The position numbers and the translations under genes are program-made. A DNA stretch of 63,884 nt, the filler included, from Hyphochytrium catenoides (lineage: Eukaryota; Protista; Hyphochytriomycota): NCBI GenBank assembly GCA_900088475.1. It is 9 parts of 9 records of this genome, joined end to end, with 100 filler letters (N's around TTAATTAATTAA, not from the genome) between each part and the next. Parts side by side here need not be neighbours in the genome. Positions count along the whole stretch, not along the records: positions 38,587 to 50,578 come from FLMG01002681.1; positions 50,679 to 55,434 come from FLMG01001586.1; 7 more parts are not named here. One strand, written 5' to 3'. This document shows, one piece after another, positions 49,891 to 57,531 of this stretch (positions within the stretch are counted from its first letter, which is position 1; each line of letters opens with the position of its first letter). Below the pieces are notes generated by a model, which was not told the DNA's origin, ran no database searches, and saw nothing but the letters and a program-made list of their open reading frames with translations.

Positions 49891-50699
49891 GTGGGGGAAC
49901 AAAGCCCAACAAAGACAGGAGAAAGTGGCGAAGACCAAGGAGAGAGCCACAGAGACAGTGCCAGAAGGAGCCGAACGAGGGAGAGGGAGAAAGTAAGAGA
50001 GACACAGCCGAGACAGGAAGAGAGAGAGAAAGAAGGTGCGTGGAGGAAGGAGAAGAAGGGGGAAGACACTTTGTAGAGACAGAAGCTGAGGTGAGAAGGG
50101 TATATACGTCGGTGCTGCTGCTTCTGCGCAGCATGGAGGAAGGAACTCAGAAGCAGAACGGAAGGAAGAGAGAGGCAGCTCCCTCCGTATCATGTCTTCT
50201 CTTTCACCATCTGTCTCTGTTGTCTCTCTCTTCTTCTTCGCTTCCCTCTCTCTCCTTCTTCCTCCTCGCCCCCGTCTCTCATCTGCCCTTGCCTATGAAT
50301 GAAGGAGAAGAGACGCGACTGGTTCTCTTCTCTCTCTCTCTCTCTCTCTCTCTGTCCTTTCGTATGTTTCTGGCTCTCTCCGTCACCTCCCCAAATAGCA
50401 GGAGGGCCCTGATAACCAAGAAGCAGAGTGACGGACGGACACACACACACACACGCAAGGATAGAGAAAGGGGATAACTAACAGCCGCCTTTCTTAGACA
50501 CTTAGACTTGGGCCGTTACAGAATCAACGAAAGATTTTATCAGGCTTGATTAGAGTCTGATAACTGGTTTAACCCCCCNNNNNNNNNNNNNNNNNNNNNN
50601 NNNNNNNNNNNNNNNNNNNNNNTTAATTAATTAANNNNNNNNNNNNNNNNNNNNNNNNNNNNNNNNNNNNNNNNNNNNGTGAAAGTTGCAAGACAAGTA

Positions 50700-50945
50700 G
50701 AATAAGTAGTTGTACAGAACAGATACTTGGAGTTGAGGATCCACCAAGTCCGTTTCACTTACCGAGCTATCAGGTTCGGTTTCCCTCCACAGAGCGAGTG
50801 GTAGACCTCGAAGGTCCACTGCTCTGGATATTTGCGCTGCCTACTAAACGGCGGCGGCGGTGAAGAGGGGGAGGTTGGGCTTGTGCTGTGATCAAATTTA
50901 AAAGCTGAATATTAGAGACTTCATCGCCGCCACCATTATTGACTC
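50700..50945 (-). ncRNA. Candidate Fanzor omega-RNA scaffold
   Basis: Four stems directly 3' of the Fanzor stop codon: 50934-50919 pairing with 50865-50850 (16 positions, one mismatch, one G-U), 50826-50790, 50780-50761 and 50754-50718. The location matches where TnpB/Fanzor omega-RNAs are encoded. The ends are not defined. Confidence 0.6.
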
Positions 50946-50946
50946 T

Positions 50947-53900
50947 CTACTTTGGCAAAGCAATGTCCTCACCTTCATCTTGTTGTAGGGCATCCGTCGC
51001 TTCTGCCCTTCCCCTTCTTCTTCCCGTCTCTACCGGCGGCCTTGCTGTTCCCATTGAGGAACCTGCTGGCCGCCTCCGCCGCCGCCTTTTGAAGGCAGGG
51101 GGCCGCTGTGGTGAACGGGCAATGAAAAGAATATTCTTTGCCGCATTCACATCACGTGACAGCAGATGTCTGCCGGAGGCCTTGCACGCGGTGGACCGAC
51201 ACCGGCGAAGTCCTCGGACTGACTGCCAAGCAGTGACCATCGTCTATGAGCAAATGTGGGAAGGACGGCAGAGGTTAGAATAGTGTCTGTGCATTTTATC
51301 GTTTACACTGCTCACCTCCCCTTCGACGCCTCTGTCAATCCTTGGCTGGATTCCTCCTCTCTGCTGTCGCATCGTGCCCGCGACCCCTTGAGACCTCATC
51401 CTCNNNNNNNNNNNNNNNNNNNNNNNNNNNNNNNNNNNNNNNNNNNNNNNNNATCGAAGCACAGAGAAGCCAAGAACCTATCCACTGTGCGCCGCTTGTT
51501 GATGTAAACATCGAACTTTGCTCTGGCCACACGGCGCTTCCGGACGTGAGACGTTATCGCTTCCCACTTCACGCGAACGACCCGGAGATAATCCACAAAC
51601 TCCTGAAGGGTAGCGGCTGCATGGTTGAACAGCATGAGGATTTGGGTATAGAATCTTATTGTAGAAGCCAAACGTCCACACCAAGATGACAAAGAGACAA
51701 GACAAAATGGAGATCTCAAGGTGGTACTAGGGGCCTTTCAAACTTAGATAGATCAGAGGTTCCACATGTTTTTGTTGATGATAAAGATTAGCGACGAGTA
51801 CAAGATGAATGGGGGAATAATCAAGTGAAGAAGAGGTACCAAAGCTTAAAGATAAAGAAGAAAAGCTAGCTGAAGATGCTCCACCTTTGGCCCTGCGCTG
51901 AGAGAGCGCTTGGATGGCCGAAAGATATTCCTCCGAAGAGGCATCCCATTCAGCCATCTTCTCCCTGCTCAAATTGCGGTGACTTTCCTGCAGGTATTGT
52001 CCTCGGGACAAATTGTACACATGCCCCTCGTCATCAATTCCACAGAACATGTTTGTCCTCCCCGGATCGACACCAATTACCCGAGGATGTTCAACTGGAT
52101 AGCGGAGGAGAAAAGGGGAAAGTTTAGGATCATTTAGAAAGTAAAAAGGACCGTCATCAAGTTGCCCCGATGACAAACGACTTACCAGGGGATAGATGTT
52201 TATGCGGGGTCCGCTGTCCCCATTGGCGCTGTCCTCTCGCAGTCGCTGGAGTTGTGGCTCTACGGCCTGTCACAACGTAGTGGAAGCTACCTGTGACGCC
52301 ATCCGTCTCAAGGAGTTCTTGAGGTGGAATTTCAAAGAAGAGGAGAAGAAGTCAACCGGTGGCTGAGGTCAAGGATCACCTCCTCAGGTTTCGATAAATA
52401 ATAGAATAAGATGTTACCTCCAAAAACCCTCGGACCGACCTCACCCAGCCGATCTTGCTTCAGATCAAAAACTATCTTCCACATGTAGTGGCCATCTGCA
52501 ATATTTCCACCATGGTTGCAATAGGCTCTCACTGCATCTTCCCAGTTCCTGTTGAAACCAGCAGGATCGGCTCTACTGCAGGATTGTATAATTCCGCTGG
52601 GTTTAAGGCAGGCGGGAAAGGCGAAGGGAGAAGGGCGGCGAGCAGGAGAGAGAACACAGCAAATGCCGCGCAAAAGTTAGCTAGGTAGGTTAATGACTGA
52701 GCAGACATTCCAACTGGCTGTCGAAAGGGAACTACCGCGATCAAAGAGGTAACCACCTGTTCCGTACCTCAGGACTCTACTGTCCACAAACACGTTATGC
52801 CTCCCAAAGGAGGGCAGAGGCGCTATGGAGAAGCGCTTCGCGAGACTCCGACCATTGGCTGTTCTAGTCGGAGTACGCAAGTTGCCCTCTTCATTTCCTC
52901 CACCCCGCTGCCGGCGATTCCGCTCCCTCCTATTTGCTCTCTTCCTGTATCGCCGCCTCCGCCTCCTAACAACATAATAAATGCAAACGTTAGTGTACCA
53001 GAGGGCATCAACTACTTGGTATGGAAAGACAAAGACAGAAGACGGTGTACAAAGAAGAATGCCAGCGATCTCAATCAAGAGGGAATGGTTAACCCACCTT
53101 TCTCTCAGTTCTTGCGCGGTGCGTTGAGGATGANNNNNNNNNNNNNNNNNNNNNNNNNNNNNNNNNNNNNNNNNNNNNNNNNNNNNNNNNNNNNNCCTTT
53201 CCCTTTTCCTGCGTCTTCCCCTTTGATCGCGAGGTCGACGTTCTCTGGGTCGAGGAGGAAGAAGGTGGCCTTGCGGACCTCCCTGCTGCTGCACCAACCC
53301 GTCTAGATACTGGGAGATTACAACTTGATATCTCCATAGCACATGTACAAAGTGATTGGGATGCTTCCTGATTAATTTCTTTGTAATCGGCTCCACCTGT
53401 GAAGTACACTAAACGTGGGGTCTCAGCATAGAGGTGGACATAAAGCATACTTGAGGAAGCGCTATTGAAGATGGTAACAGCAGACGAGTCTTCAATCCCT
53501 TGGTCCAAGCTGATTTTCAAGAAGGAGCACACATGAAAGGCGAAGCTAGACGAGAACAAGGCTTTCAGGATCAGAGACAGAAAAAAACAGAGTTGACGGA
53601 AGAGAAATGAAGATAGAGATAAGTGCCTCATCAAAGAGATCTTACCCTCTCCCTATCATTCGTGTAAGCACAGAGTCTGGCCCTCTCCTGTCTGATGTAC
53701 ACTTGCACATCATCTGGGAAGACATCTAGAGGTTGAGTATCCTCCTCCTCTACGCCCTCGTCCTCGTTCTGCCAAGTTGCCGCAGCAGAGGAGTTGGTAG
53801 GACAGAACAACAGTCAGTTTCATCTACCAGCCCCAAATCTACTGTTGAGTAGATACCTCCTCCGCGTCAGCGTCTTCTGCCACTTTGTCGGGCCAGTTAT

Positions 53901-55226
53901 TCATTTGCTTTCTGATCGCCAGAAGTGTCCGCTTACTCAGTCCATGATGCCGAAGGGACACGCGCAGGTAGTCCAGCTGACGCTGGAAAAAAGGCTCCTA
54001 GTGGTTCGTGGTCGTAATACGTAGATCAAAAGCATTAGAAACCTTTCGAACATAAACTGTTTCACCAAGTTTGACAGAGAAGGGGGATCATCAACAGCCA
54101 AGATCCCACATCAATAGTGGGCCACCCATTATAGGCAAAGCACAGGAGGATGCCATTTCTTATTATGAGACTGAGTGCCAAAGTCGATGAAGAATGAAAT
54201 CGTAGGGTCATCCTCCACGTTCAGCTAAAAATAAAGGTAGGGGTACCAACGTCACAATGAACAGTAATAGCAGACATACCGCTAGATGGTTCATGAAGTT
54301 GGTTTGGAGCTGTAACCCAACTTGGGTGATAGAGTTGGCGTCCCCAAGCCTTCTTTCAAATTTCTGGAGAAGGCGGTGGGAAAACCCCCCGCGGCCCGCA
54401 CGAAGGGCATTCTTAAGGAGGTTTGCAGGAATGGGCGGGCAATATTAGACTATTATATGAGAGTAGCTGAAAGACACGGTAAATGGTAGAGACTGAGCGA
54501 TGCTGCAAATCAGTACTTTCCGGTAAAACGCTAAAGACAAGAGTACACTTACCACGAATGTTGTGAGCTCCGCACTGAGCTCCATTCGCCTACGCCTACC
54601 CCTCCCAGCCGGATCTTCAGCCTCCTCACCGCAAATAAGGACCAGATGTATGAAAGTGTTGGCCTTCGAAAGATTGGCCAGCGGGTTCCCATTTTGGAGG
54701 GCCCAGAGCAAATAGAGGTTTAACGCTTCCCCCCCTGCTCTATAGGCGTTGGAGACCGCGGTAACGCGAGCCTCCAGCTCGTTTTTGAAGCCCGTCCGCA
54801 GGACATTCCGATCAGGCTCCGGCAGAGCCCAAACTGTTTTGCCTGGNNNNNNNNNNNNNNNNNNNNNNNNNNNNNNNNNNNNNNNNNNNNNNNNTAGCTT
54901 GTCCCTCTGTTCTTCCATACTTTTGTCATATAATCTCTCCTCCACGGTTATTACATACCAGACAGATCGCCATCTAATCCAGCTGTAGTGGCTGGCTGTC
55001 GCGCATTGAGTGTGTCGATGTGTTCTTGAAATCGCTGTCGACTTCCTGACCGTCTATGTTGTCTCCTCTGCGATGCCTCCTCCACTCCACGCGCGTCTAA
55101 AATCAATGGATGATAAGATACGGTTTCTTGGCACATCCACTACGATACTATCAAGAACTAGTAACACCGAAAGCAGCAGAGAAGCGATAGAAAGAGCACG
55201 ATGACATCACCAGCTGAGGACGTCAT
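50947..55226 (-). CDS. Fanzor: Fanzor1-type RNA-guided endonuclease (eukaryotic TnpB descendant), intron-rich, with three internal N gaps
   Basis: Spliced exons 55226-55211, 55096-54959, (gap)54846-54553, 54363-54280, 53997-53857, 53768-53646, 53396-(gap)-53098, 52965-52768, 52596-52418, 52317-52186, 52094-51885, 51616-(gap)-51316, 51243-50947. Motifs in Fanzor1 order: VTAVSNAY..GGEALNLYLL, GDANSI...TNFMNHL-EPFFQRQ, RFSIAP.....NVFVD, W..VFDL, FGELLETDG, RuvC-I VIGVDPGR, bridge-helix-like KFDVYINKRRTVDRF, VRGLRRCRSTAC (Zn ligands), RuvC-III SRDVNAAKNI. Confidence 0.9.
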
Positions 55227-57531
55227 AGCAATGATTCTTCAATCATGCGTGAGTGAGGCCCCATAGCATCATTGATTCTTCTGCCCCAGCTCTTCGCTGA
55301 TCGGGAGCCAAACTTTGATTTGTTACTTGTCTTTTTCGGGAAAATTGTAAAATGATCTGTATGGTGCCCAGGGTTCTCCCTCCGGTTCTTGGGTTCGTGT
55401 CCAATCTGTCGCTCCCGAGACTCTTAAATCCCGCNNNNNNNNNNNNNNNNNNNNNNNNNNNNNNNNNNNNNNNNNNNNTTAATTAATTAANNNNNNNNNN
55501 NNNNNNNNNNNNNNNNNNNNNNNNNNNNNNNNNNTCCACTGAAGGACTCCCAAACTAGCGGCACAAACTGCAGCCCCAATAGCTGGCATGGATTGCTGCA
55601 TCGGAAAGGGTTCTAGATTGCATTGAATCCGTAACGGACACATCAAAGGTCGTGTACTTGTACCGATAAGAAATAAAGGAAGCTGTGAAATAACAAAGCT
55701 TCTGGCTTCTGATCAGAGCCCAGAAGAAGGTGGCGAGGTTCACGGAAGACTTGAGCCCAGAGTCCCGAAAAACTGGAAGAGAACGTCTTGTACGCGGCGG
55801 TGACGCTGAAGGCATTTATGGAACCCAAACAAGGCTGGCACGAAACAGGAGTGCAAAGCAGAGGGAAACCTAACAACCATCACAACGTTAAACCAAAGGA
55901 GAAGAAGTAAGCTTCAATTGCAGCCAGGGTCTAGAACCAGTCCGAAGAAAAGCCCCTGCGTCGTACGAGAGAGAAGTAGCGCGTAAGCGAGCCTCGGAAC
56001 GCAAGTCCAGGGTCAACAGAAGACAAAAGGACCTGGGCAGCCGTCGCCGTCCAAATAAACAATCGAGACGGCAGGTGGTACCGTTGCAGCAGCTGATGCA
56101 ACTCTTCTAACGACAAGACGAGGTAAGGGCAGGCTCTCAATCCGTCCGCTTCGTGAACATCATTGGCATGCCGGAAGGCGTCGAGCAACTGGTCGGCCAA
56201 CTTAGGAGAGTATGGCTCGACATCCGGCAAACGCGAGTTGACGCCATCAACATGGCCGAGGAACCAACAACAGAATAAGATACGCAAGAATCGTGAGGGA
56301 GGAGGCAGACGCTAGACCAAGGCCACCCACCAGGTCCGAAAGGGTTAGGAAGTGGCTTGCCGCCAACCCAGGTCCAAGACGGAAGCAGATCCAAGAGTCG
56401 AGCGAGAAATCCGCGTACTCCGAGGTCAAACTGAGAGCAAAGAGAGGCCACCTGAGAGGGAGGACAGCCGCGTAACTGGATCTTGGCAAAGCCTAGACAC
56501 TCGCGAAAGAGACAAATTTGTGTCTGAGAGGAGACAAAAGGAGCATTGCATCAAGTTCACTTAGATGAGAGAGGACAGAAGAAGCAAAAGAAGCGACGAA
56601 GAAGGCAGAATTAATGGGTGCGTCTTATGTAAGAGTTCCACACCCTTCACCACTGGTTGAGAAATTGCCGCAGAGAAAGATGGAAGTCACTCAAGGTTCA
56701 TACGGGGGTTCCAAAGCTCGCACATGTCCAGGATGAGCCTAAGCCCATTCTGTGGGCTGCGGTCTTCTTGAAGGAGGGCAACCAGGGGCCGTCGGTAGCG
56801 ACAACCTCTCCAGTGCCATCATTAAGGTACCACACGTGGAGGTCAAGAAAGGTACGGACGCAGCAATGTCGGTGGCAATAGGATGAGAGAGCTAACGCGA
56901 GAGCACCGGACAGAAGGGTCATCTTTCTGGACTCCGTAAAAAGCAGCGACGAGGAGAGCAGAGCCATAGAAAAATGGGATGGGGTGGATTAACAAAAAGA
57001 GGCCCGAGGAAGAAGAGTAGGAGAGAGTGATCACGGGCGCCATCCAAAATAGCAAAGAGCTGATCGGTGGACAGTTGAAAGGAATCTTGCACTCAACCTT
57101 CAGCAAGGGCTGATCCTTGTCGTCACTCAAGTCATCAACGACAGGCAGTAGAAATTCACCTTCTCCACCAACAGGGAACGCTGTGCCCCGCCTGAAGCGC
57201 GGTGAGAAGAGAGACAGAGCCTGGGACTTCACTATGTCACAGGAGCACTTGGACACTAATCGACAAAGAATTTNNNNNNNNNNNNNNNNNNNNNNNNNNN
57301 NNNNNNNNNNNNNNNNNTTAATTAATTAANNNNNNNNNNNNNNNNNNNNNNNNNNNNNNNNNNNNNNNNNNNNTTCACCATCATATCTCCTTCTCCTGAC
57401 CATTGTCGGGTTAATCTCTTTGAGTTTGCTTCTTCTTCAGCTCTTCATACACTGATGGTGAAGATGCTGCTAACTCACCTTGGCAGTCCTTCTGATACAT
57501 TCTCTTTTTGTCGCCCTTGATACCCTTTCCA

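Follow-up and report, generated by a model that had tools for sequence, protein, structure and literature searches.

A Fanzor1-type gene on the minus strand

The window, by which we mean the whole 63,884-nucleotide stretch of Hyphochytrium catenoides DNA that was analysed, contains a piece at positions 50679–55434 whose readable sequence is almost entirely filled by a single gene on the minus strand. Six-frame translation and tblastn of relatives placed homologous exon blocks at about 54277–54435, 52764–52847, 52229–52342, 51880–52128, 51462–51668 and 50950–51240, split by short introns whose ends are GT...AG and whose branch sites resemble CTAAC. This intron-rich gene runs from a proposed start at 55136 to 50947, with the stop codon TAG at 50947–50949. 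The exon block at 51880–52128 carries the RuvC-I motif VIGVDPGR. The aspartate of this motif is present, as VIGVDPGRTN (about 52090–52060) aligns with the invariant VI.VDPGR of the relatives and, via a profile of these relatives (A2), with the IDPNK motif of SpuFz1. The last coding block (50950–51240, minus strand) contains the second Cys pair of the TNB zinc finger, which is the only pair that is readable, followed by the RuvC-III motif SRDVNAAKNILF and a basic tail, KRRRRRR, that has the appearance of a nuclear localisation signal. The TNB/RuvC-III region (GLRRCRSTAC...SRDVNAAKNILF) was matched to A2 by hhalign with 95.2% probability, and a weak match to PF07282 was also detected (E 0.023).

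The exons were aligned by tblastn to the relatives P0006, P0002 and P0008, and comparison with the alignment of these proteins (A2) by hhalign gave probabilities of 98.6% and 95.2%. The A2 profile in turn matches the solved structures of SpuFz1 (8gkh, E 8.3e-8) and GtFz1 (9cer, E 3e-4). Direct phmmer searches of the solved structures returned nothing, and the gene is therefore tied to the characterised Fanzors indirectly, via the profile alone. The full-length relatives P0006, P0002 and P0008 themselves match the PF07282 TNB family weakly. The closest relatives of the protein are metagenomic fragments and giant-virus genes, and when the RuvC-I exon served as query in an exhaustive HMMER search, just eight relatives were retrieved, the best of which was a 67-amino acid fragment with 57% identity. 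The C-terminal ORF had no match among 5.8 billion proteins, not even to itself, the ORFs of this genome being absent from that collection. A metagenome scan with the C-terminal exon found nothing, and neither the protein nor its 3' tract is present in the supplements to PMC10432273. Judged from its motifs and profile matches, the gene is a Fanzor1-type TnpB homologue of a poorly sampled lineage, in agreement with the identification made in an initial, sequence-only reading of this DNA.

Three DNA runs of the organism (X1, X2 and X3) contain the stretch, and their Logan contigs were compared with it at a likeness of at least 80%; such contigs show presence rather than absence and can miss sequences. 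The runs of N in the gene are masks over real sequence and not gaps, since between 51403 and 51453, where the stretch has 49 N, the contigs read 208 letters, and between 54846 and 54895 (the N run at 54847–54894) they read 114. The N run at 53135–53195 is probably also a mask. The codon for the RuvC-II glutamate lies under the mask at 51404–51452, with the readable text restarting at RMRSQ, the residues that follow the DE of the relatives. Because of this mask, the integrity of the nuclease and the reading frames across the masks are not readable from the stretch.

At the 3' end of the gene, a possible 68-nt intron can be read on the minus strand at 50905–50972, with a GUGAGG donor at 50972, CUAAU at 50915–50911 and a CAG acceptor at 50907–50905. 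Its removal would excise the stop codon together with the 5' arm of the first downstream hairpin (see below) and would add about 50 codons to the ORF, which would then end at a UAA near 50764. The putative extension has no similarity to the C-termini of the relatives.

Copies of the gene and ends of the element

Paralogue contigs that are about 90% identical cover 51512–51961 and 53230–53643 at about one third of the main depth, and many further paralogue variants cover 53700–55434, that is the 5' half of the gene and its upstream sequence, including a 109-nt replacement at 55201–55311. The gene is thus a member of a repeated family, and its 5' half seems to have more copies than its 3' end. 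A comparison of copies had been proposed in the sequence-only reading as a means of delimiting the element; the Logan contigs provided paralogues elsewhere in the gene, whereas run X1 showed none of 80% or higher likeness over 50838–51155, which takes in the C-terminal tail and the first half of the 3' tract and where the depth is that of the single main contig (49.8). This absence argues weakly against a conserved multi-copy 3' end.

The Logan contigs of X1 and X3 both begin exactly at 50718, which is the base of the last predicted hairpin downstream of the gene. This position was considered as a repeat or copy-number boundary and rejected, as the depth in X1 is equal on either side (about 49 versus 49.8). 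Position 50836 is a G in the stretch and in X3, a T in X1, and both in X2. The contig starts at 50718 and the variants at 50836 may reflect strain or haplotype differences in the 3' tract. In each of the three DNA runs, a contig that matches the stretch from 53878 upward has TTAGGG repeats before this position, and this junction is that of a truncated paralogue, comprising the gene's 5' half, located beside telomere-type repeats.

A search for a terminal inverted repeat between the two ends of the piece yielded nothing beyond a 10-mer within the range of shuffled sequence. A candidate left end at 55323–55333 was contradicted by paralogue variants that continue beyond it. The contig may end before the element does.

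Predicted structure of the 3' tract

The contig extends 268 nt beyond the stop codon. This tract lies directly 3' of the Fanzor stop on the sense strand, as had been recognised from the sequence, and this is the site at which Fanzor guide RNAs are typically encoded (PMC10432273, PMC10530073, PMC10711439). The four stems proposed for it in the sequence-only reading are all present, and so is the A/U-rich tail of about 39 nt that had been put forward as the candidate guide; its positions (50679–50717, minus strand) are unpaired, have a G+C content of 36% and extend to the contig edge. Folding bore out only part of the multi-hairpin structure. Hairpins 1 and 2 clearly beat shuffled sequence, with energies that were reached by none of 200 shuffles, but stems 3 and 4 are weak.

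Hairpin 1 (50847–50937, minus strand) begins 10 nt past the stop. Its arms (50847–50865 and 50919–50937) are 19 nt each and 84% complementary, and they form a stem of 18 bp that includes one G-U pair, is interrupted by one mismatch and closes a 53-nt A/U-rich loop. Folded alone it gave z scores of −5.7 on the sense and −4.2 on the antisense strand, and of −3.6 with its flanks; as for every hairpin folded alone here, the limits were fitted to the hairpin, which flatters the values. Hairpin 1 is the sole strongly non-random structure of the tract. Its G-U pairing had been thought to work on the sense strand only, a claim that did not survive closer inspection in that, on both strands alike, the stem contains one G-U pair and one mismatch, and its antisense form is the more stable. 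The arms consist in part of (GGC)n and (GCC)n repeats. The (GCC)n of the 3' arm (50846–50860) is 93% complementary to the (GGC)n codons for the arginine run of the C-terminal tail (51076–51090), and in a fold of 562 nt the 3' arm pairs with the coding (GGC)n at 51072–51086 in preference to forming hairpin 1. No duplicated word flanks hairpin 1 in the sequence of the tract.

Hairpin 2 (50790–50826, minus strand) is a bulged, G+C-rich stem-loop of 14 bp that is comparable on the two strands (−15.8 kcal/mol and z −3.4 sense; −16.2 kcal/mol and z −2.6 antisense) and that is retained in the centroid folds of both the tract and a longer context. A metagenome scan with a gapped DNA pattern of this hairpin found nothing. 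Hairpin 3 (50761–50780, minus strand) is weak, with 5 bp on the sense strand (−4.5 kcal/mol, z −2.2) and 8 bp on the antisense strand (−10.0 kcal/mol, z −4.6). Hairpin 4 (50718–50754, minus strand), also weak, has G-U pairs that favour the sense strand (−10.5 kcal/mol and z −1.4, with 13 of 200 shuffles as good, compared to −7.5 kcal/mol and z −0.4 antisense). The strand preferences expected for these two stems, antisense for stem 3 and sense for stem 4, were thus borne out, unlike that for stem 1.

When the tract was folded as a whole (50679–50950, 272 nt), the sense strand reached −79.2 kcal/mol with a z score of −2.09 (5 of 200 shuffles as good) and the antisense strand −87.4 kcal/mol with a z score of −2.10. 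Since the two z scores are equal, folding gives no preference for the sense strand. The part that contains hairpins 2–4 (50705–50832, 128 nt) had z scores of −1.36 sense and −2.08 antisense, and its minimum-energy fold on the sense strand differs from three separate hairpins. In 150-nt sliding windows the tract is no outlier within the piece, with sense z scores of −0.7 to −1.7. Rfam searches over the whole piece gave no match in the tract, and two sub-threshold chance hits elsewhere.

A two-stem element at the stop codon of viral relatives

Giant-virus relatives of the gene were found by a scan of viral contigs. Three of these, L007, L009 and L011, share a block of about 95 nt that begins within the last codons and ends some 95 nt downstream of the stop. 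It contains a first stem of 8–10 bp and a second, long-range one of 11 bp, with compensatory changes. The resulting two-stem element spans the stop codon (L007 3544–3655, L009 3553–3672, L011 3518–3632), has the loop word CAUUUUAAAU and terminates in ...GGUGUA. Weaker forms, also across the stop codon, were found in L002 (2006–2109), L010 (3498–3615) and L018 (2812–2892). Detection over the stop of the eukaryote-like loci was weak, both in L002 (15 bits, E 0.27, and 0.073 in another search) and in L018 (13.6 bits). In an alignment that includes L002 and L010 (A7), 92% of the cells are paired and 16 pairs show changes at both positions, counts that are flattered by the fitting of the alignment to the model; no shuffled or slid control reached these values. 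The two-stem element is a likely omega-RNA of this clade.

A covariance model built from the relatives (R1) had its best match to the tract at 2.2 bits (E 1.2 in 562 nt searched), which is not significant, and a second model (R2) gave no match within the tract. Neither model detected the element in L001, the closest full-length relative, whose 3' flank has no alignable similarity to the tract. The contigs L002–L004 represent one locus in three runs, so their comparison yields no boundary. The proposal of an omega-RNA downstream of the gene is backed by a covarying element at the same site in relatives, but not by a significant match of the R1 or R2 model to the tract.

Hairpin 1 resembles the element of L007, L009 and L011 in its site relative to the stop and in the long-range stem that closes an A/U-rich loop. 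The word UUUUAAAU of the two-stem element also occurs in the loop of hairpin 1, with 50893–50903 corresponding to L002 2083–2093; in the tract it lies 30 nt from the 3' arm, whereas in the viral element the loop word adjoins the 3' arm. The first stem of the viral element has no counterpart in the tract. The word shared between the hairpin 1 loop and L002 is the 11-mer UUUUAAAUUUG (50903–50893; p about 0.03 among six comparisons). The first 14 nt of the tail (50717–50704) agree at 13 of 14 positions with a motif of L001 that directly follows a long stem in its 3' flank, and 10 of 300 shuffles were as good (p about 0.03, six targets tested). Both words were considered as evidence of homology and set aside, as neither is significant after correction, and they serve as leads only.

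The core 7-mer of the motif shared with L001 is over-represented in the piece. This core resembles the outer part of a mariner inverted repeat. The likeness was also rejected as evidence, as the orientation would be wrong for a right end and the partner repeat is absent. The long stem in the 3' flank of L001 (2047–2150) is G-rich on one side and C-rich on the other and has the same 9-nt word, CCTGTACAA, on both sides; this arrangement has the look of a small foldback insertion bordered by a target-site duplication.

Among the relatives, P0002 is encoded directly downstream of a 477-amino acid serine recombinase (PF00239) on a contig of 83.8 kb, a layout like that of IS607. P0013 has a DDE_3 fragment of the Tc1/mariner type upstream (L018 513–758). 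Members of the clade seem to be carried by transposons of more than one kind.

Interpretation of the tract and its alternatives

The tract shares with the omega-RNAs or reRNAs of characterised Fanzor1 systems (SpuFz1, GtFz1, PpFz1 and the Fanzor1 of SfAV) its sense-strand site 3' of a Fanzor1-type ORF, several stem-loops with an unstructured stretch behind them that might act as the guide, and a gene that belongs to a repeated family. It differs from them in that neither a terminal inverted repeat nor a target-site duplication was found for it, and in that the known RNAs were defined by conservation among copies, small-RNA reads and co-purification, the candidate tract by sequence and folding. 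The most likely reading, to which we give about an even chance, is that the tract (50679–50960) encodes at least part of the omega-RNA (reRNA or fRNA) of the nuclease. This reading draws on the identity of the gene, the position of the tract, and the precedent of the relatives and the literature, rather than on direct evidence from the tract. The tract would then be the 3' non-coding end of a Fanzor1-type element. The omega-RNA would be transcribed in the sense of the gene, and the protein would bind the structured scaffold through its RuvC/TNB and WED surfaces. A guide of about 15–20 nt, read from past the right end of the element, would direct cleavage of matching DNA next to a TAM. We infer the transcription of the tract, its processing, its binding by the protein and the end of the scaffold. 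The same logic, with a scaffold at the 3' end and a guide from the flank past the right end, holds for the TnpB omega-RNAs of IS200/IS605 and IS607 elements, and the locus is a plausible candidate example of a textbook arrangement.

The size of the RNA is constrained by known systems. The omega-RNA of SpuFz1 has a 75-nt scaffold, which lies in the 80 nt or so that separate the stop from the right inverted repeat, and a guide that reads 14–15 nt into the flank (PMC10432273). Fz1 omega-RNAs of 75, 90 and 150 nt have been described, with a first stem-loop of 7 bp and one to three more (PMC11423790). The reRNAs of Fz1 have a three-stem shape, include the TIR and TSD, and extend about 15 nt past the TSD (PMC10711439), and fRNAs can reach about 200 nt beyond the ORF (PMC10530073). 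The scaffold first proposed for the tract (about 50945–50718) is out of line with these lengths, at about 230 nt compared to the 75–150 nt total of Fanzor1 omega-RNAs, and its end at 50718 was set by the base of the weak stem 4 only. Two shorter layouts fit the literature better than a scaffold of four hairpins. In one, the scaffold would be the last 110 nt or so, with hairpins 2–4 and an end near 50718–50705, and the guide would be the final 25–39 nt or so, which fits the three-stem form reported for Fz1. In the other, the scaffold would be the first 100 nt or so, with hairpin 1 and an end near 50845, which fits the element of about 95 nt in the viral relatives. An unusually long omega-RNA of about 230–270 nt, with four hairpins from the stop codon to 50718–50705 and a guide in the last 25–39 nt or so, seems to us quite unlikely; it would be about double the length of any Fz1 guide RNA characterised so far.

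Several of the observations made here are also those expected of an ordinary 3' UTR, or of DNA internal to the element, with fortuitous or regulatory hairpins, the omega-RNA lying beyond the contig edge or this copy having lost a working one. The tract as a whole has a z score of only −2.1 that is symmetric between the strands, it is unremarkable in sliding windows, no conservation of it was detected in paralogues or relatives, and the contig ends just 268 nt past the stop. Moreover, its A/U-rich stretches and an AAUAAU soon after the stop, as read from the sequence, would suit polyadenylation signals. We nevertheless consider this explanation unlikely, albeit a serious possibility, given that structured RNA begins at or just past the stop in every characterised Fanzor and in the viral relatives of the clade and that hairpin 1 is well beyond chance. 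The energies of hairpins 1 and 2, which were matched by none of 200 shuffles, also speak against the view that the stems are functionless and merely what a sequence of 50% G+C with (GCC)n runs would be expected to contain. That view is in keeping with stems 3 and 4, which are inside the shuffle range, and with the partly trinucleotide arms of stem 1 with their competing partner in the coding region, yet for the tract as a whole we regard it as very improbable.

A role at the level of DNA, in which hairpins 1 and 2 would be subterminal repeats recognised by the element's own transposase or recombinase, or else a small MITE-like foldback insertion, would be consistent with hairpins 1–3 folding equally well or better on the antisense strand, as DNA palindromes would. 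It is in keeping with the long stem of L001, flanked by a repeated word in the manner of a target-site duplication, and with the serine recombinase and the DDE_3 fragment adjoining relatives. The stems of an RNA are also palindromic in the DNA that encodes them, so the strand symmetry is compatible with an RNA as well, and the piece has neither a matching repeat at its other end nor a duplicated word around hairpin 1. We therefore think a DNA-level role improbable.

Confirmation of the omega-RNA would leave the known picture of Fanzor action unchanged. It would add the guide RNA of a Fanzor1 lineage that is remote from those characterised so far and whose gene is heavily divided by introns, would help to map how scaffolds have diverged in the family, and might yield another compact editor.

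Structure within the last coding exon

Bacterial TnpB scaffolds overlap the ORF extensively and contain a pseudoknot, whereas Fz1 RNAs have been reported to lack one (PMC10711439). As with these ORF-overlapping scaffolds, the strongest predicted structure of the piece is located inside the last coding exon, at 51029–51228 on the minus strand, with z scores down to −4.9. In terms of the predicted fold, this structure could be the 5' part of a TnpB-like omega-RNA that overlaps the ORF, or it could be a by-product of composition. It includes a 13-bp hairpin that is formed by the codons for NAAKNILFIARS.
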